Source: Obrimoposthia wandeli
Lineage: Eukaryota
Reading direction: 5' to 3'
Assembly: GCA_977020255.1 (NCBI GenBank)
Contig: CDROCS010000253.1
Span: forward strand, 310,001-374,000
DNA: 64,000 bases
Positions 10,247 through 45,231 of this stretch are shown piece by piece. Under the pieces are notes generated by a model that was given only the letters and a program-made list of their open reading frames with translations, had not been told where the DNA came from and ran no database searches. A program made the position numbers and the translations under genes. Position 1 is the stretch's first letter. Each line of letters begins with the position of its first letter.

Positions 10247-11860
10247 TTAATAGATAGAGGGCCTTACTTCTGGAGGGATTGATTCAGGGTACTGCACATA
10301 CCATTTCTCCAACCAGATTTCTATCTCCTCAGGTACGACTCCTGGATTAATAATATCACCTTGAATTAACTCTCCGCCCATCGCTGTATAAGCTTTTAAC
10401 GCTTCATGTCTGTCAATGTCAGTGCCAACAAGTGGAATTTTCATACTGCGAGTCAACGTAACAAGTGCATTGGTTATCGCCTTATCTACCCGGTTACTAC
10501 TATCATTTGTTAATTGTTGACAATTTATTTTAAGCTGATGAATTGCCATTTTTCTTATATAACGTAATGATTCATAACTGCCTGAAAAATTAGCGATGGA
10601 AACTTTTATATCCAATGATTTTAGCTGATCTATGATGACTTTCACCCGATTACTCGCACCAAGCATTACTTTCTCACTCAGCTCAATCATTAAGTATTTA
10701 CCAGAAATATCATACTCTGTTAATTGTTGTTCAATATAATCAACCAAATCCACTTCAAATAAGCTTTCACTCGACAACGTCACAGAAATACGTTGATATA
10801 TTCCCCTTCTATGCAAGGTATAAAGGGTTGAAAGCGCTTTTTTTAGCATATACTTTGTCAAGAAATATAGCTCACCACTATGTTCAGCCAGATCCGAGAA
10901 CTCATCTAACTCTAATGGTTTAACCAAGCCGCTTTCATACCAATGAAGTTTCAATTGGAAACCGACAATATTGTGGTTATTAATATTTACTTGAGGCTTG
11001 AAATAGCAAAATAACTTCTCTTCTTTAATATCTAGACGTAACACCTCCATCCGAGCAAGCTGGACTTGGTTATATAAAATACTGCTATTATCGAAATAAT
11101 TAATTGCTTGTTGTGTCTTTGAGCTATTAAGTAAAGCATCACCTGCATGGGCAATAAGTTCATCAAAGTTATCACCATTCTCACCTAAGATGGCAAGACC
11201 AAAAGCGAGTTCAAAATCCAAAGAGAAGCTCTTAAAGCTCATTGCATCAGGCACAGCATCCGCAAGTTGCCGACACAATTCATCAAGAACACTTTGATCA
11301 TCAAAGCGACAATCAGTTAAATTATAAACCACCAGAAACTGTAAACCTTGTAAACGAGCAATACGTACAGGATGAGAGCTAAAGCCAAAACTTAACAAGC
11401 TGGTATTATTCGCTACTTTCTTCTGTAAACAGTATGCAAGCTGCAATAATAATAAGTCAGAATTATGATGGCCTAGTAAACTATTGACTTGTTGGAAATT
11501 AATAGGCTTGAACACCACAGCAGCATAACGTTGTCCGCTTTCAGTCTTGATAGCGGCTTCAAAAGCTCTTAGCGCTTGCTGTGTTGTTGGTAAGTTAGTT
11601 GTAGGATCATGAGTATAAGAAAGTAGCTCTTCAAAACTAATAGCTTTACTATCATCATGTAAAGAAGTGGCGGTGAATAGTTTTTCAATAAATACTAAAG
11701 CCAACATAATAACGGTAATAACCGCAATAATATAGCTAACAATAGCGATCAAACTAATTGGAATTTTATCACTATAAAGTTGCGCAAAAAGTGCAGATAA
11801 GGCAACAATGACAATAAGAATAATAAGTAAAAAAAAGTACTTGGCGTTTAAACGGCTCAT
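10247..11860 (-). CDS. Membrane-anchored GGDEF-EAL protein with both catalytic motifs degenerate
   Basis: Two N-terminal TM helices. GGDEF-like FQQVNSLLGHHNSDLLL and RIARLQGLQF; EAL-like VGFQLKLHW and ANFSGSYESLRYI. Confidence 0.85.
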   Translation of the reverse strand: MSRLNAKYFFLLIILIVIVALSALFAQLYSDKIPISLIAIVSYIIAVITVIMLALVFIEKLFTATSLHDDSKAISFEELLSYTHDPTTNLPTTQQALRAFEAAIKTESGQRYAAVVFKPINFQQVNSLLGHHNSDLLLLQLAYCLQKKVANNTSLLSFGFSSHPVRIARLQGLQFLVVYNLTDCRFDDQSVLDELCRQLADAVPDAMSFKSFSLDFELAFGLAILGENGDNFDELIAHAGDALLNSSKTQQAINYFDNSSILYNQVQLARMEVLRLDIKEEKLFCYFKPQVNINNHNIVGFQLKLHWYESGLVKPLELDEFSDLAEHSGELYFLTKYMLKKALSTLYTLHRRGIYQRISVTLSSESLFEVDLVDYIEQQLTEYDISGKYLMIELSEKVMLGASNRVKVIIDQLKSLDIKVSIANFSGSYESLRYIRKMAIHQLKINCQQLTNDSSNRVDKAITNALVTLTRSMKIPLVGTDIDRHEALKAYTAMGGELIQGDIINPGVVPEEIEIWLEKWYVQYPESIPPEVRPSIY

Positions 11861-11957
11861 ATTTACCCACCCAACCTAGAAGATTTTATTAGGCAATTTA
11901 ATTACCTAATAAAAGTATAGCCTTTTGTACAGAAAGACTAGGTATTAAGCTGAGATT

Positions 11958-12494
11958 TTAAGATGGGCAAGTACTTTTTTGGTCTTTTGCTAACACGTTA
12001 GTGTAATCGTCTTCAAATGTAAGCAAGGCATCAACTAAAAAAAGAAATCCATTAAGATTATCACTGGACCAGTAACGCTTTAATTGCTTATCACTTGTGA
12101 CTATCAAAGCAACGAATTTTTTATAAGCTGAACTATCTTGATTTTCAAAACACTTCTGAGTAATGGCTTTAAGTCGGCCTTTTCCTTTTAAGCATTCCTT
12201 AAAAATAATACTGTAGTTATTAATTAATGGACTGATTAATTCTGCATGTTGTAGGAGTTGCTCATTCTCGTTCGCTTTAGCATAAGCTTTTAAACGCTTT
12301 AATCTCACTTTGTCAAACTCTTGCTCACGCGTAGCAACAAGCGTCAACGCATCTACTAATACCTTGTTTTCCTTGGTGGTAGACAAACTTTCACGTTGTT
12401 GGGTTAGTAGCTTTCTCTGCAGTTTTTCGGATCGGAAAAATAAATAGACACTTATGACTACAAAAAGAAGAGTCATAACTAAAAAAAAGAACAT
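11958..12494 (-). CDS. Hypothetical protein with N-terminal membrane anchor and coiled coil
   Basis: 178-aa ORF with a hydrophobic N-terminus; start overlaps the upstream stop (TAATG). Confidence 0.75.
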   Translation of the reverse strand: MFFFLVMTLLFVVISVYLFFRSEKLQRKLLTQQRESLSTTKENKVLVDALTLVATREQEFDKVRLKRLKAYAKANENEQLLQHAELISPLINNYSIIFKECLKGKGRLKAITQKCFENQDSSAYKKFVALIVTSDKQLKRYWSSDNLNGFLFLVDALLTFEDDYTNVLAKDQKSTCPS

Positions 12495-14413
12495 TAAGGT
12501 ACCTTAGTTGGGTTAACTTGTTCAATATTAACAGATTCAGCAATGCGTGCCAAAAAGAGATACGGATCAATATCTTTAAAATCAGGCATATTTAACGAGT
12601 ATTTCATCGTGACTGAAAAATCACCTAAGTTTGCAAAAGCTCTTGTATTTACAGCTTGCACTAGTTTCTCTAGCTTTGCATTAGCTTCTTGACTACTTTG
12701 GTGCTCAAAAAGCAGTAAATACTCACCTTCATTTAATAAGCCCGCAGAGTCAAACTCCGTTATTTGCTCATTGATTACGCTGGCCAAACCTTTAGTCACT
12801 TCACGAATACGTTTACTATTAAAGTGAAAAATAAGCTCCTGCCAATTCTCAACAATAAGATAACCAACATGCAAAGGGTATTGAAATTTTTTTGACTTTT
12901 TAAAGGCCAATTGATAATTAAACTTTGTTTGCATGGGGGCAGGCATAGTATAACTTGGCTTTTCAATCTCATCGTACGCTTGATTTATTCTTTGTGTCCT
13001 TAACCTCAAGAATAAGCCGACTAAGCTGAGTAGCAATAAACAAGCTAATATTGATAGACCTATAATAATGAATCGTTGTTGTTGATACTTTCCAGTAAAA
13101 CTACTCGATAACTCACTGCTTTCGGCTAATTTAACGGCAAGCCTTTTTGATTCTTCAACCGGTTCAGTTTTGAGTGTTTTACCTACCGCTAAGTGAGATA
13201 AATCTTGCACCATGCTGAAAGATTTTCTCTTGTAATTAAGACTATAAAGTAATACTTCACTATATTTTTCTCGCCAGCGATAAGCTATTTTATAATTTTC
13301 TTGTGCGAAGTGCATTTCAGCAACCATTCGATAAAAGCCAGCATAATCTAACGAAATATCTTTGCCATTAAGAAGCCGTACTACTTCAATTAATAAGGTA
13401 TAACCTTCCATAGTTTGTTTAACTTCTAACTTAGACTTTACCAGAGCAACAGAAGTTTCTATACGTTCAGCAAGCATATTATGTTGATAAAAGACTTTAA
13501 TTGCTTGTTGTAAAGGCTCAAGTGCTTGGTGAAATTGTTTTTGTGTTATTAAAACAATACCTAGCCCTTTATTGGCATGAGCGACATCAATCGAGGCCCT
13601 ATTTTCTTCCGCTGATTTCTTAGACTCCCAAAAAGCATTATAGGCATCGTCAAAGCGTTGTAAGTGAAAATAGGCATAGCCTAAGTATAAATAAGTTTGA
13701 GCAATATTTCTTTTTTGCCCCATTTCAAATCTTAATTTTAATATTTTTAACTGCATGGTTAACGATGTTTGATAATCACCCAGATGGTGATAAGCCAAAG
13801 CTAAAATAGTTAGCAATTCAATATGCTCTGTCAATTCACTTTTACTGATACCCCGTTCAACTTGCTGTAGGTCTGCTAAACCCTGCTGGTGTTTTCCCAA
13901 CATTGAAAACGCGACACTACGATAACTTAGCGACAGTAACTGGTATTTAACACTACGGCTAAGTGCGCTATTATTTACCGCATATTGAGTCAAATCTAAT
14001 AACTGTTTATATTGTTTTTTAGCAAAGTGCACATCTGCTAACTTTAATAACAACGCTAATTTAATTTTTTTATCTAGGCTATTTACCGCTAAACCATTTT
14101 GAGCAAAATCAAAGACTTGATTAATATTCCCCTGATTACTAGCAACCCTTGCAGAGAGTAAGTAGACTTTGGCGAGAATATCATTTGAGTAATGCTGTCG
14201 ATTCTTGATGATTTTTTCCGCCAATATCTTCACCGTATCTGTGTCAACAATTTCATTATTTACTTGCAATAGTTGCTGTACTTGATTACTTAACACCGCT
14301 TGCTCAGAAGGTGGTTGTGCAAACGTAGTAGTACTGACCAAAAGAAAAGAAAGTAATTGCGCTTTTAAAGTGAATACAATAAATAGAAACAACCGCTTTA
14401 TCGTCATATCCAT
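12494..14413 (-). CDS. Exported TPR-repeat sensor with one TM helix and a degenerate GGDEF-like domain
   Basis: Signal-like N-terminus, TPR-like helices (ALAYHHLGDYQTSL; LGYAYFHLQRFDDAY), TM IIIGLSILACLLLLSLVGLFL, and C-terminal AGLLNEGEYLLLF in place of R-x-GGDEF. Confidence 0.8.
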   Translation of the reverse strand: MDMTIKRLFLFIVFTLKAQLLSFLLVSTTTFAQPPSEQAVLSNQVQQLLQVNNEIVDTDTVKILAEKIIKNRQHYSNDILAKVYLLSARVASNQGNINQVFDFAQNGLAVNSLDKKIKLALLLKLADVHFAKKQYKQLLDLTQYAVNNSALSRSVKYQLLSLSYRSVAFSMLGKHQQGLADLQQVERGISKSELTEHIELLTILALAYHHLGDYQTSLTMQLKILKLRFEMGQKRNIAQTYLYLGYAYFHLQRFDDAYNAFWESKKSAEENRASIDVAHANKGLGIVLITQKQFHQALEPLQQAIKVFYQHNMLAERIETSVALVKSKLEVKQTMEGYTLLIEVVRLLNGKDISLDYAGFYRMVAEMHFAQENYKIAYRWREKYSEVLLYSLNYKRKSFSMVQDLSHLAVGKTLKTEPVEESKRLAVKLAESSELSSSFTGKYQQQRFIIIGLSILACLLLLSLVGLFLRLRTQRINQAYDEIEKPSYTMPAPMQTKFNYQLAFKKSKKFQYPLHVGYLIVENWQELIFHFNSKRIREVTKGLASVINEQITEFDSAGLLNEGEYLLLFEHQSSQEANAKLEKLVQAVNTRAFANLGDFSVTMKYSLNMPDFKDIDPYLFLARIAESVNIEQVNPTKVP

Positions 14414-14464
14414 ACCGTTAGTAGTTAAAAAATAAAATATTGGAGATTATCCAACATTACTGAC

Positions 14465-14728
14465 TATACCCGTTACCAATCAAGATGCATTTTTCAGAGT
14501 GCTTGAGCAATTTCAATTCAAGGCGCTGTGATGAAACAATGGTTATTCCCTTATAAATCACAGCAACGATGAAGTGATGTTACTCAAGCGATTCTGCGAT
14601 GGGTTTAAAGTGACTTTATTCTTCGTCAAATAATCAAAGTATAGAGTGACTATGCTTAAATTATTTGCTTTGCCTAAAGTCATTTTAATTCCCACTGAAA
14701 TCCTGCACTTTGAATGGTAACGGGTATA
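14465..14728. repeat. ERIC/MITE-like element, family A full length (264 bp)
   Basis: Terminal inverted repeat TATACCCGTTACCA(A/T)TCAA...TTGAATGGTAACGGGTATA; homologous to 24609-24788 and, inverted, to 44968-45231. Confidence 0.92.
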
Positions 14729-14762
14729 TACCAATAGGACTAATTTATTGATCCGTTTGGTA
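14727..14762. repeat. 36-bp minimal palindromic repeat abutting the family A element (shared TA)
   Basis: TATACCAATAGGACTAATTTATTGATCCGTTTGGTA. Confidence 0.78.
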
Positions 14763-14806
14763 CTACTCTTTTACCTCATAAAGGTAAACAAAAATAGCAT
14801 TTTCTA

Positions 14807-14834
14807 TTTACATTTATAGAATTCATCCTATAAT
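14807..14834 (+). promoter_or_regulatory. Sigma-70 promoter upstream of the c-di-GMP riboswitch
   Basis: TTTACA (14807-14812)-N16-TATAAT (14829-14834); start site expected near 14841. Confidence 0.75.
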
Positions 14835-14851
14835 GATTGCAGTTGAGCTTC

Positions 14852-14941
14852 AAAGCTTGATAAGGGCAAATCTAATGAAAGTTAGAGACGCAAAGTTACC
14901 GGTCTAATGGGAAACCTATGATAGCGGGACTGCAAATTTTA
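14852..14941 (+). ncRNA. c-di-GMP-I (GEMM) riboswitch aptamer
   Basis: GGGCAAA-TCTAAT-GAAA-GTTAGA-GACGCAAAG-TTACCGGTCTAA...ATGATAGCGGGACTGC. P2 has a GNRA tetraloop and P3 pairs. Equivalents of Vc2 G20 (14865), A47 (14892) and C92 (14933) are conserved. Confidence 0.93.
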
Positions 14942-15162
14942 GATATAGTGGGGGCTTATCTTAATTCGATAGTTCACTATCTGTTTCTTCCGTTTTCTTT
15001 GCGTGGCCCCTCCCCCTCATTTCTGAATTTATAACTCTCTCTTAGTTACCTATAACCTATTAAAATCTGTCCGAAATCACTAATAATAAAGACTCGTTTG
15101 AACCTAACACAGAACTCTCTGTATCAGGCTATTACTAAAACAAGCTTCAGTTAATGTTTAGA

Positions 15163-16944
15163 TTACTTATTTTGAGATTTTTTATCACTAATATAATGCA
15201 TTACTATTTTATCCAACATAGGTAATGGCATTGAGCCATGTTTCAGTAATTGATCATGAAAATCTCGTAAATCAAAGTTTTCACCTAATGTTTTTTCCGC
15301 CTCTTTTCGTAAACGCTTAATAGTTAACTCCCCCACTTTGTACGATAAAGCTTGTCCTGGCCATGAGATATAACGATCTATTTCTGTTTTTACATTATGC
15401 AGTGACAAAGCGGTATTATTGGCTAAAAAGTCTATTGCTTGTTCTCGACTCCATCCTTGCGTGTGTATTCCAGTATCAACGACTAAGCGACAAGCTCGCC
15501 ACATTTCGTACGTTAAGCGACCAAAATTATGGTAAGGATCCTCATACATGCCAGCTTCGATCCCTAAGTACTCAGAATATAAGCCCCAACCTTCACCAAA
15601 AGCCGAAATGTAGGTTCTATTCCTAAACGTCGCTACATCATTCATTTCTTTTGCGAGTGATATTTGCAAGTGATGCCCTGGCACGGCTTCATGTAATGTT
15701 AGTGCCGTTAAGACATAAAGTGGTCGACGATCTAGTCTATAAGTATTGACCCAATAATTCCCTGGTTGATCATCTCGTGATGAACCCGCATATCGTCCGG
15801 TTGTGTATTTAGGGGCTATATTGGCAGGTACTGCCATGACACCATAAGGTGTTCTAGGTAGCGTCTTAAATAACGTAGGTAATTTAGCATCCATTTTTTT
15901 GGCAATAAAGGACGCTTCTTTTAATAGTTCTGTCGGTGTAGTCGCATAAAATTGAGGATCGCTACGTAAAAACTGTACAAACTCACTAAAGTTACCTTCA
16001 AAGTTTACTTGCTCGATAATGTCGTCCATCTCGGCTCTGATACGTTTTACTTCAGTCAATCCTTGCTGATGAACTTGCATTGCCGTCATAGGTAACGTGG
16101 TATAATGCTCCAGCCTGTTTTGATAATACTTGTTACCGTTAGGAAGTGAGTTAGCAGCGATATTATCACGCGCATTGGGCTGATATTCATTAACCATAAA
16201 ACCATAATAAGCCTTATATGCAGGCATAACTTTAGTACTTAACACCTGCTTAGCTTGTCGCTGTAAATCCTTTTGTTGATTCGGAGTGACAAAAGCCGAC
16301 ATTTTATTAAACGGTTGATAATAAGTACTTTCAGTAACATTTTCTTTTATGTAAGCCGCAATAGATTGTTCAAATCCCTTAAGCACTATTTTAGGTTGGC
16401 TAATACCTTTTTTTAGTCCTAACTTCATCCAATAAATTTGCTGGGAAAAATAGGCTGGCAGTGCGGATAAGCGTGCTAAATAATCTTGATAATCAGTAAA
16501 GGTTTTAAAGTCGACTTGCTTTGAAATATTTGCTATCCAAACATGAAAACCTGATTCTGCCGTGAGCGGCATATAGTGCTCTTTGTTGGTGTAGCTATCT
16601 AACAGGTTTTTCAGGCTATAGGTAAGTACCGAAAAATTTATTTGGTTCTCTTGTGTTAGCTTTTCATTATCTAAGGCGGTTAACTGCTGATAAATGGCCA
16701 AACGTTGTTGGTATTGCGTTAACAAAAATTCTGCTGATAAATTGGGTAACTTAGCGTTATTCCCTAAAACTTCTGGCTGATTAAACGGACTTGATTTTAG
16801 ATAAAAGTCTTCATGTGCTTGGATAATATTTGCTAGTTGTTGATCTGTATTAATAGTGTTTTCCACTGAACCAGTGGCGTAGCTGTAATTTATCAGACAG
16901 ATGTTTATCAGCAGAGTCACTAGGTAAGTGGCTATATTTTTCAT
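15163..16944 (-). CDS. DUF885 family exported protein (putative metallopeptidase-like)
   Basis: Signal peptide; HEAVPGHHLQ, AFGEGWGLYSE, EIDRYISWPGQALSYKVG, FDLRDFHD motifs. Confidence 0.9.
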   Translation of the reverse strand: MKNIATYLVTLLINICLINYSYATGSVENTINTDQQLANIIQAHEDFYLKSSPFNQPEVLGNNAKLPNLSAEFLLTQYQQRLAIYQQLTALDNEKLTQENQINFSVLTYSLKNLLDSYTNKEHYMPLTAESGFHVWIANISKQVDFKTFTDYQDYLARLSALPAYFSQQIYWMKLGLKKGISQPKIVLKGFEQSIAAYIKENVTESTYYQPFNKMSAFVTPNQQKDLQRQAKQVLSTKVMPAYKAYYGFMVNEYQPNARDNIAANSLPNGNKYYQNRLEHYTTLPMTAMQVHQQGLTEVKRIRAEMDDIIEQVNFEGNFSEFVQFLRSDPQFYATTPTELLKEASFIAKKMDAKLPTLFKTLPRTPYGVMAVPANIAPKYTTGRYAGSSRDDQPGNYWVNTYRLDRRPLYVLTALTLHEAVPGHHLQISLAKEMNDVATFRNRTYISAFGEGWGLYSEYLGIEAGMYEDPYHNFGRLTYEMWRACRLVVDTGIHTQGWSREQAIDFLANNTALSLHNVKTEIDRYISWPGQALSYKVGELTIKRLRKEAEKTLGENFDLRDFHDQLLKHGSMPLPMLDKIVMHYISDKKSQNK

Positions 16945-17034: not shown

Positions 17035-17580
17035 CTATAAGTTAAAGAGAAGCTCTCTATATACTTTTAACTCAGCGATTGATTCTTTGATGTCATCTAA
17101 AGCCAAGTGAGCGCCAGTTTTAACTACCGCATCTAATACTTCAGGTTTCCAACGTCTTGCCAACTCTTTTATCGTGCTAACATCTATATTACGATAATGA
17201 AAATGATCTTCAAAGTCGGGCATGTATTTATTAATAAAGCGTCTATCTTGACCGATACTATTACCGCACATCGGTGATTTACCTTGAGGTACCCATGATT
17301 GAACAAAGGCTAAGCTTTGCTCCGTTGCTTGAGCCAGAGTTACTTCACTGTCGCGGCAACGTTGCGTTAATCCAGATTTACCATGATGTTCGATGCACCA
17401 CTCATTCATATTATCCAAAACATCATCACTTTGATTAATGGCAAATATTGGTCCTTGCGCGAGGGTATTTAAATGACTATCGGTAATAATGATAGCGATC
17501 TCTAAAATAACATCCTCTGCAGGCTCCAGTCCTGTCATTTCTAAATCAAGCCAAATTAAATTATTGTCATTATCCGCCAT
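17035..17580 (-). CDS. orn: Oligoribonuclease
   Basis: [55 protein letters not shown]. Confidence 0.97.
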
Positions 17581-24608: not shown

Positions 24609-24788
24609 TATACCCGTTACCATTCAAGATGCAAGTTCAGAGTGCTTGAGCAATTTCGATGGGTTTAAAATGACTTTATACTGCGTTAAATAATCCAAAC
24701 ATAGAGTGACTATGCTTAAATCATTTTCCTTGCCTAAAGTGATTTTAATTCCCACTGAAATCCTGCACTTTGAATGATAACGGGTATA
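24609..24788. repeat. Family A element lacking the internal module (180 bp)
   Basis: Same ends as 14465-14728 but joined GAGCAATTTC|GATGGG, so the ~84-bp internal hairpin module is missing. Confidence 0.92.
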
Positions 24789-24809
24789 TAATAACAAAAA
24801 TTTTATCAC

Positions 24810-44790: not shown

Positions 44791-44967
44791 GTTGAATTTG
44801 AAGTGCTCTTGATCGATAGTGTAAAAACCTCTGCCTAATTAACTCAAGCCGCGAATTTTTCTCTTCAAGTATTAAGTAATCATCTAACAACTATAGCAAT
44901 AACATCGTTAGAAGTTACAGCTTCTTCTGACGCTATTATTGGTTATGTAACCTGCAATAAACGGGTG

Positions 44968-45231
44968 TATACCCGTTACCAATCAAAGTGCAGAACTTCA
45001 GTGGGAATTAAAAGCACTTTAGGCAAGACAAATAATTTAAGCATAGTCATTCTATGGTTTGATTATTTAACGCCGACTAAAGTGATTTTAAACCCATCGA
45101 AGAAGCGTTTGAGCAATATCACTTCATCGTTGCTGTGACTTATAATGGAACAACCATTATTTCATCACAGCGCCTTGAATTGAAATCGCTCAAGCACTCT
45201 GAAACCTGCATCTTGAATGATAACGGGTATA
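44968..45231. repeat. Family A element, full length (264 bp), inverted relative to 14465-14728
   Basis: TATACCCGTTACCAATCAAAGTGCAG...TGCATCTTGAATGATAACGGGTATA; same length and internal module as the first copy. Confidence 0.92.

Follow-up and report, generated by a model that had tools for sequence, protein, structure and literature searches.

The stretch of DNA analysed here (64,000 nucleotides (nt) of contig CDROCS010000253.1, here C253, positions 310,001 to 374,000, in the Obrimoposthia wandeli assembly GCA_977020255.1; hereafter the window) carries a cyclic di-GMP (c-di-GMP) riboswitch of the c-di-GMP-I (GEMM-I) class behind which no gene follows in the same direction. We show that this orphan riboswitch belongs to an RNA unit, about 175 nt long or longer, that is transcribed independently and does not serve as leader for any gene here, and we are confident that it represents a conserved autonomous riboswitch RNA with a switch between an aptamer and an anti-aptamer fold. 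From 5' to 3' the unit consists of a promoter, a 5'-terminal hairpin (P0), the aptamer, a hairpin with a GGGG loop (H1), an anti-aptamer strand (X) and a pyrimidine-rich tail (Table 1); the 90 nt behind the aptamer are here called the platform.

Conservation of the RNA unit

Twenty-seven Colwellia-like loci were located via the DUF885 protein, whose gene converges on the RNA in the window. In 19 of them the aptamer is kept in the same place, convergent to DUF885, with 108-551 nt between the aptamer end and the DUF885 stop. An alignment of 20 sequences shows conservation of the promoter hexamers, the 5' hairpin, the aptamer, a 20-mer at H1 (GATATAGTGGGGGCTTATCT, 14942-14961) and the heptamer CTTTGCG (14997-15003); similarity stops near 15020, and to either side of the unit only the closest relatives can be aligned. 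Across Colwellia species whose DUF885 proteins are 63-90% identical, the promoter hexamers, the aptamer, H1 and X hardly vary. Among 401 sampled genomes of the Genome Taxonomy Database (GTDB) family containing Colwellia, the H1 20-mer (at most two mismatches) occurs as a single copy in 100, against 2 for the reversed control, and 86 of the 90 loci fetched are true homologues with every feature, placing the unit as a single copy in at least 86 of the 401 genomes.

Colwellia genomes hold two to four GEMM-I copies, the orphan RNA among them. The other c-di-GMP-I copy on the window's chromosome (C253:2486854-2486957, minus strand, equivalent to L007:1501-1604; 53.7 bits) lies 17 nt upstream of a co-directional 133-aa GTG-initiated open reading frame (ORF), as is usual for a riboswitch and unlike the orphan. 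Thirteen genomes of the family (L091-L103) have a 20-50-nt insertion in the apical part of aptamer helix P3, and some of them carry GCGGGGGC instead of GUGGGGGC in H1; DUF885 is convergent in 12 of the 13, and there is no TPR or cyclase match nearby.

The aptamer matches the Rfam c-di-GMP-I model (RF01051) over its full length, as the initial annotation had proposed in calling it a complete GEMM-I aptamer (75.7 bits against a gathering score of 35 bits, E 4.6e-13, model positions 1-87 of 87). This is the sole Rfam match across the window and the best-scoring model of its clan; no further Rfam family appears at E<=1 within 14780-15180, platform included. The consensus blocks GGGCAAA, ACGCAAAG and AGCGG, which we take to hold the equivalents of the Vc2 ligand contacts G20, A47 and C92, are present and near-invariant. 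The three-helix architecture is upheld by compensatory changes in homologues: for the closed aptamer together with P0 and H1, 96.9% of cells pair among 86 homologues and 13 pairs (95 cells) have changed on both sides, values that none of 500 shuffles reaches, while slid controls have 29-44% of their cells paired. In the window the outer pair of P1 is G.A, and in 36 of 82 sequences it is unpaired.

A promoter scan at this stringency finds 5 sites where 4.6 are expected, placing any one site alone at chance level. We accept the promoter as real because its hexamers are conserved among relatives: both are invariant in 20 of 20 Colwellia loci although the spacer between them varies, and the pattern T[TG][TG]AC[AT]-N15-19-TA[N]AAT is matched by 78 of 86 family loci, with a 16-nt spacer in 77 and TATAAT in all 78. 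The TTTACA-N16-TATAAT promoter of the initial annotation is confirmed in this way; the predicted transcription start is ~14841, behind TATAAT.

Both hairpins that frame the aptamer are maintained as structures. P0 is paired in 92.7% of cells (86 sequences), with compensatory changes in two pairs (for example GAGCC/GGCUC and GAGUA/UACUC), and it is formed in each predicted fold state. H1 is paired in 99.3% of cells, with compensatory changes in three pairs; its stem takes the forms GACA/UGUC, GGUA/UACC and GAAA/UUUC among the family matches, and GGGGGCUU, CGCAAAGU and, in strand X, UUUGC are invariant in 86 of 86 sequences.

Table 1. Features of the riboswitch RNA unit and of its neighbouring genes in the window
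Feature	Position	Strand	Description and basis
Sigma-70-type promoter	-35 TTTACA 14807-14812; -10 TATAAT 14829-14834	+	16-nt spacer; scan score 11/12 and conservation
P0, 5'-terminal hairpin	14843-14860	+	GAGCU/AGCUU stem, UCAA loop, directly 3' of predicted start; RNAalifold
c-di-GMP-I (GEMM-I) aptamer	14855-14937	+	RF01051 full-length match and covariation
H1 hairpin	14942-14960	+	Stem GAUAUAGU/GCUUAUC, invariant GGGG loop
H2 hairpin, lineage-specific	14968-14981	+	GAUAG-UUCA-CUAUC; 3' arm pairs with own 5' arm or with aptamer GAUAG (14920-14924)
Anti-aptamer strand X (CCGUUUUCUUUGCGU)	14990-15004	+	Complementary to aptamer core ACGCAAAG...CCGG (14888-14902); inverted repeat I7
Pyrimidine-rich tail (GGCCCCUCCCCCUCAUUUCUG)	15005-15025	+	Pairs with aptamer 5' AAGGGC (rod base) or with H1 G-run (helix T)
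GGDEF-EAL gene	10247-11860	-	Pfam GGDEF and EAL; in apparent TPR-headed operon
TPR-protein gene (639 aa)	12494-14413	-	Pfam TPR_12; divergent from the RNA, starts upstream of promoter
DUF885 gene (593 aa)	15163-16944	-	PF05960, E 4.9e-167; convergent, stop 225 nt past aptamer end
orn (oligoribonuclease, RNase_T)	17035-17580	-	PF00929, E 5.7e-36; upstream of DUF885, same strand

Two mutually exclusive folds

The main anti-aptamer pairing joins CUUUGCGU (14997-15004) to ACGCAAAG (14888-14895). Strand X pairs with the aptamer core in 86 of 86 sequences, so that the platform is mutually exclusive with the aptamer. The duplex has a median predicted energy of -18.6 kcal/mol (range -12.5 to -26.1; 87 sequences), and 78% of first-pass duplexes were better than the shuffled-5'-part control by more than 2 kcal. 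The anti-aptamer core helix is 95.9% paired and lacks covariation because both of its strands are invariant. Its extension depends on lineage, with 13-14 contiguous pairs of the type CGGUA(U)ACUUUGCG in many lineages and a split arrangement in Colwellia proper.

The tail has two partners. In the whole RNA its start pairs with the aptamer 5' strand, and three pairs of this base helix are formed in ~90% of sequences via G-C/G-U exchange; alternatively the G-run of H1 pairs with the tail in what we call helix T, which appears in platform-only minimum free energy (MFE) structures of many lineages as AG.GGGGGC paired with GCYYYC.CU. The 12-nt tails of the 86 sequences contain 454 U, 391 C, 141 G and 46 A (82% pyrimidine), and form duplexes with the G-run at a median of -9.1 kcal (-5.4 for random 12-mers) and with the 5' strand of P1 at -5.8 kcal (-2.5 for random 12-mers). 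The pyrimidine bias fits the two purine partners, AAGGGC and the H1 G-run. The C-rich tract that the initial annotation had described as anti-Shine-Dalgarno-like is kept merely as a pyrimidine-rich stretch whose letters vary, and our searches found no target for it in trans.

Further pairings accompany the main one. RNAalifold pairs 14920-14924 of the aptamer with 14977-14981 (CUAUC), the 3' arm of H2, and in two species (L021, L022) GAUAG/CUAUC has changed in a compensatory manner to GACAG/CUGUC; in other lineages the H2 region is replaced by a longer anti-aptamer strand. The exclusive pairings noted in the initial annotation, GATAG with CTATC and GGGGC with GCCCC, do exist, but the main anti-aptamer strand had escaped it.

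By MFE prediction and by the alifold consensus, the whole RNA forms a single rod and not the aptamer fold. Besides the core helix, the rod includes CCG with CGG, UUUCUU with GGGAAA, CUAUC with the aptamer GAUAG, and the tail start with AAGGGC. Its predicted energy is -50.5 kcal/mol against -33.4 kcal/mol with the aptamer enforced, favouring the rod by 17 kcal/mol. Folding of successive prefixes yields the aptamer first, H1 next, and invasion once strand X has been transcribed. Folded as a single sequence, the RNA is not exceptionally stable (z -0.68), and because of this the structural argument is based on comparative data.

Since the rod is predicted to be the more stable by this amount, we infer that the choice of fold must fall during transcription, in a kinetic co-transcriptional switch. 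If c-di-GMP were bound before X emerges, the aptamer would be trapped closed, with H1 standing alone or its G-run clamping the pyrimidine tail; otherwise the core and the 5' strand of the aptamer would be invaded by X and the tail, and the entire RNA would become a single long rod. P0, which both folds would share, may serve as a 5' protective hairpin.

Changing genes behind a constant RNA

Context typing by tblastn, with the proteins of the window and the ORF from L037 as queries, sorts the homologous loci by what lies behind the RNA. In type A (28 loci) the TPR gene (-) and the RNA (+) are followed by a GGDEF gene (+) whose product has 325-334 aa and whose start lies 187-417 nt beyond that of H1. 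Type B (18 loci) has the RNA (+), DUF885 (-) and then the GGDEF gene of type A (+). Type C (26 loci), which comprises Colwellia proper including the window, has the RNA (+), DUF885 (-), orn (-) and rsgA (+), the last lying behind orn, and no cyclase. Type D (13 loci) has the RNA (+) and DUF885 (-) with no TPR or cyclase match, one locus being without a DUF885 match as well, and in type O (2 loci, L053 and L064) the RNA (+) is followed by orn (-) and rsgA (+). The order in L052, a type A locus, is RNA, cyclase (+), orn (-). DUF885 is convergent to the RNA in types B, C and D, and the spacers behind the RNA range from about 5 to 680 nt. The most constant neighbour is the TPR gene, with a match upstream in most type A, B and C loci.

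The association between RNA and DUF885 is broken both ways: 28 type A and 2 type O loci have the RNA but no DUF885, and at least five loci have DUF885 but no RNA. The cyclase is likewise separable. It is absent within 3 kb of the RNA in 39 loci of two separate groups that keep the RNA unit. In types A and B alike, whether the gene is adjacent to the RNA or beyond DUF885, the motif CTAGA[GA]AAT stands ~55-65 nt before the GGDEF start, and the cyclase therefore has a control element of its own, separable from the RNA, probably its own promoter or operator. The motif is often preceded by a (T)GGYAC/TAGCAC-like sequence (L036, L037, L066-L124).

No cyclase orthologue was found on C253, where the best match is 27% identical. 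A relocation of the gene elsewhere on the chromosome was considered and rejected, a 38% match being on C6174, the contig of a second bacterium. That second, related bacterium in the assembly has a GEMM-I element, ~2 kb of intervening sequence and then the cyclase orthologue (C6174:82108-85199), in the order RNA-DUF885-cyclase.

In a tree of the TPR proteins the context types are interleaved, with L052 placed inside the window's clade at 99/96 support; the tree is midpoint-rooted only, and ancestral order is not established by it. Repeated loss from an ancestor with RNA, DUF885, cyclase and orn is the most parsimonious account of these sequences. In the window's lineage the neighbouring cyclase gene appears to have been lost, yet the RNA has stayed under purifying selection.

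These contexts bear on an objection raised in the initial annotation itself, that relatives might carry a gene directly behind the aptamer that was simply deleted here. Such a gene does exist in related genera: it follows the RNA directly in 28 loci and comes after DUF885 in another 18. The non-coding block of ~90 nt behind the aptamer is conserved. Because the RNA is nearly invariant in lineages without the cyclase, simple deletion leaving a relic is not the best reading.

Transcription

RNA sequence data were drawn from Logan contigs of metatranscriptomes in four studies. One 152-nt contig lies whole on 14854-15005 without a mismatch. A 208-nt contig lies whole on 14865-15071, is free of mismatches but has an additional C in its C-run, and so derives from a window-like strain. 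A third covers 14855-15008, has an Illumina adapter abutting 14855 and continues 142 nt into sequence like that of Colwellia demingiae, and a fourth covers 14867-15010, accompanied by a further piece at 15100-15139. In seven metatranscriptome runs of four studies, some of them libraries of just 30-150 Mb, at least 57% of the 180-nt RNA is represented, against ~0.2 of a 621-nt stretch. None of the RNA-library contigs in the four studies matches the DUF885 or TPR genes. They reach 15071 to ~15150, short of 15163, and do not reveal strand or rare species.

In support of the initial annotation, the RNA is represented in RNA libraries as a short contig; contigs give neither strand nor ends nor level. 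Contig ends were rejected as RNA ends, since they coincide with strain-variable sites; the sole hint of a true RNA end is the adapter abutting 14855 in one run. Carry-over of DNA may contribute, though this would give the RNA no advantage over the genes beside it.

The RNA as possible product

The reading we favour, tentatively and at somewhat less than even confidence, is that the functional product is the RNA itself, a small RNA responsive to c-di-GMP and made in abundance, which would expose or hide X and the tail, soak up ligand, or both. It would not be there to regulate DUF885; DUF885 and orn would merely lie behind it after loss of the ancestral GGDEF cyclase. Favouring this are the indifference of the RNA to the gene that follows, its near-consensus promoter, P0, the GGGG-loop hairpin, the cyclase's own motif and the RNA-only contigs.

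Several observations weigh against it. The RNA is dispensable, being absent from at least five Colwellia loci that keep TPR and DUF885 (L018, L024, L025, L028, L029), and no RNA remnants were found in the Colwellia loci that lack it. The tail is without sequence conservation and would make a poor seed, an anti-aptamer platform is a hallmark of cis-acting switches, and the same-strand c-di-GMP synthase gene behind the RNA in 28 relatives resembles a natural cis target. Binding of c-di-GMP is a prediction. The contigs tell neither strand nor ends nor level, and the strain-variable sites at which they break coincide with the edges of the conserved block. No target in trans was found either: matches to the H1-core complement (at most two mismatches) in five complete or large genomes were as frequent as for the reversed-pattern control, and RNAduplex scans of the tail and H1 against 49 translation-start regions in the window yielded no focal gene, the tail binding any Shine-Dalgarno (SD) sequence. 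In those scans GGDEF-EAL ranked 4th and DUF885 2nd, each with one probe only, and no conclusion was drawn from either search. The proposal of the initial annotation, a riboswitch-gated small RNA or an antisense RNA to DUF885, stays live in both of its forms.

Somewhat less probable, in our view, is a cis-acting read-through switch in which the choice between aptamer and rod sets whether RNA polymerase passes the tail. Free X and tail, C/U-rich and G-poor, could act as a loading site for Rho, or the rod or helix T with U-rich sequence behind it could act as a weak terminator; the output would be antisense transcription into DUF885 and orn here, and sense transcription into the GGDEF cyclase, as feedback control, in relatives. 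Riboswitches that act via Rho are known (mgtA, ribB), and Orn degrades the pGpG that arises from c-di-GMP turnover. The classical anti-aptamer strand of the platform and the 28 relatives of type A speak for such a switch, as does the base composition of the 3' region (U makes up 45-52% and C 27-32% of the 30 nt that follow X, and the region is poor in G), with runs of at least five U after the tail in 32-33% of the cyclase-bearing types against 8% of the Colwellia type. Contigs that extend 60-140 nt past the tail indicate that termination there is not tight, and c-di-GMP riboswitches are those with the strongest antisense tendency in a published survey that lists the DUF885 arrangement (PMC9943018, PLoS One 2023). 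On the other side, a scan of 14300-15400 found no terminator-like site on either strand, homologues show no conserved start codon or SD behind the platform, and neither an SD-sequestering helix nor a canonical terminator was found as a read-out of the platform. No RNA contig falls inside the DUF885 coding region. The RNA is moreover equally conserved with three different downstream genes and variable spacers, the cyclase has its own upstream motif, and RNA and DUF885 occur without each other (types A and O; the five RNA-less loci named above).

A further and unlikely possibility is that the RNA is a family-wide constitutive c-di-GMP recorder, each molecule being locked at synthesis in its ligand-bound or its rod form, with the bound form exposing X. 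The invariant CUUUGCG of X is complementary to the ACGCAAAG core universal to GEMM-I aptamers. An exposed X could on such a model act on the cell's few other c-di-GMP riboswitches or on other targets, the GGGG-loop hairpin could have a protein partner, and the RNA could buffer the ligand pool as has been proposed for the merRNA of Bdellovibrio.

That the RNA is a decaying relic, the functionless and not yet eroded former leader of the lost GGDEF cyclase gene, we regard as very improbable, because purifying selection acts on it across species with scrambled flanks. The cyclase behind the RNA in relatives, the lack of an orthologue on the window's chromosome, the outright loss of the RNA in several Colwellia lineages, the rarer U-runs after the tail in the Colwellia type and the weak outer P1 pair could all be explained by decay. 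Decay would not explain a unit that is near-invariant between species with DUF885 proteins 63-90% identical and unalignable flanks, whose helices are upheld by compensatory changes, that is present in RNA libraries of several studies, and that is kept in the 39 loci without a cyclase within 3 kb.

A leader for a small protein can be dismissed. There is no co-directional gene between the aptamer and the DUF885 stop at 15163, as the initial annotation had seen, and the sole plus-strand ORF there (38 codons from an ATG at 14918, inside the conserved aptamer consensus, to 15034, containing a 28-codon GTG ORF from 14948) keeps neither frame nor start among homologues: the distance from GTG to the invariant TTTGC is 0, 2 or 1 modulo 3 in 34, 32 and 21 sequences, the GTG frame is stopped after 6 codons in 37 of 87, GTG is replaced by GCG in 7, and conservation tracks helices rather than codons.

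The neighbourhood and the host assembly

Divergent from the RNA lies a conserved apparent operon of Colwellia (10247-14413, minus strand) with the TPR gene, a 178-aa ORF that overlaps the TPR stop by 1 nt and has no Pfam match, and the GGDEF-EAL gene; the locus is c-di-GMP-related on both sides.

An element of ~264-270 bp (14465-14734) that resembles a miniature inverted-repeat transposable element (MITE), with 25-nt inverted repeats (TATACCCGTTACC...), is inserted between the TPR gene and the promoter of the riboswitch. It is absent at the matching site in L009, L019 and L031. Further copies occur in the window at 44964-45231 and, in part, at 24609-24790; C253 holds at least 30 near-full-length copies of 76-97% identity, and another is found in Colwellia sp. 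75C3 (L010:4030-4299). In L018, a Colwellia metagenome-assembled genome, 81 nt (L018:6780-6860) lie between DUF885 and the TPR gene, the riboswitch RNA is gone, and the spacer includes GTAACGGGTATA, a match to the end of the MITE inverted repeat, which suggests that the RNA was lost there in a MITE-associated deletion.

The window lies on C253, a Colwellia chromosome at least 4.6 Mb long, within an assembly of 1.35 Gb and 6912 contigs; a bacterial genome thus sits inside a far larger assembly, which is presumably eukaryotic or mixed.

Relation to known riboswitch RNAs

The type example of RF01051, Vc2 of Vibrio cholerae upstream of tfoY, shares its aptamer fold and consensus with the orphan RNA. 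In contrast to Vc2, the orphan RNA has no downstream gene here, has its own near-consensus promoter and 5' hairpin, and continues into a 90-nt platform with an invariant GGGG-loop hairpin in which no SD-sequestering or terminator element was found. A cis-regulatory riboswitch has a co-directional gene downstream; there is none in the window or in the 39 cyclase-less relatives, and 28 relatives have the GGDEF gene. The Vc2 aptamer has been reported to affect the stability of an upstream small RNA in V. cholerae (bioRxiv 10.1101/617340), where it makes up the 3' end of an RNA that precedes tfoY, whereas the orphan aptamer lies near the 5' end of its RNA and the conserved part extends 3' of it.

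Antisense action by riboswitches has proven cases in the S-box antisense RNA of the Clostridium acetobutylicum ubiG operon and the B12-gated AspocR of Listeria. The survey cited above (PMC9943018) counts 152 antisense c-di-GMP riboswitches (P 4.6e-62) and lists, as candidate antisense-acting, a c-di-GMP-I riboswitch less than 500 nt from the 3' end of a COG4805/DUF885 gene in six Colwellia/Cognaticolwellia genomes: C. psychrerythraea 34H (CPS_4378), PAMC 21821 (its Fig 3C), MT41, Arc7-635, Arc7-D and Cognaticolwellia beringensis. In C. psychrerythraea 34H the RNA lies at 4612610-4612692 and beyond. The survey is a positional catalogue, with no platform, no expression data and no link to the cyclase and orn contexts. 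The orphan RNA lies within that distance of the convergent gene in the window (225 nt), the interval being 108-551 nt in 19 Colwellia loci, but an antisense function would also have the association kept in evolution, and the DUF885 link is non-obligatory.

EutX/Rli55 is a B12 switch that gates a sponge RNA. SreA of Listeria is a trans-acting S-adenosylmethionine (SAM) riboswitch (PMC3627812, its reference 36). In both, the ligand state of a riboswitch decides which RNA species is present or what that RNA exposes; both have known cis genes or a protein partner, whereas for the orphan RNA the searches gave no target.

Another relevant case is merRNA of Bdellovibrio bacteriovorus, a c-di-GMP riboswitch RNA that stands alone, is expressed massively and has been proposed as a ligand reservoir (PMC3627812). 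Like merRNA, the orphan RNA is a c-di-GMP riboswitch non-coding RNA without a conserved downstream ORF, and it shares with it an own promoter and conservation beyond the aptamer. The merRNA is 445 nt long and reported to be conserved only in Bdellovibrio, whereas the orphan RNA, with ~175 conserved nt, occurs in a different class, in at least 86 genomes, and possesses a defined anti-aptamer switch. The abundance of merRNA is very high; contigs of the orphan RNA come from metatranscriptomes, some as small as 30-150 Mb, that yield none for its neighbours.

No published description was found of the extended RNA (P0, H1, X and tail), its family-wide single-copy spread, its cyclase-related history or its presence in metatranscriptomes. 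The Colwellia DUF885 arrangement was already catalogued in 2023, and the extended RNA, the switch and the history appear undescribed.

Significance

Riboswitches are nearly always read as leaders of the gene that follows, and here one behaves as a gene of its own: at least 86 genomes retain its promoter, 5' hairpin, aptamer and switch, although the genes beside it differ. Entries in catalogues of antisense-acting riboswitches can conceal autonomous RNAs. If the polymerase is gated at the tail, the family would offer a natural series in which one platform faces a cyclase gene, an antisense gene or nothing. If instead the RNA acts alone, it would be the second case after merRNA of Bdellovibrio, and a far more widely conserved one, and its autonomy is directly testable in the culturable model C. 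psychrerythraea 34H.

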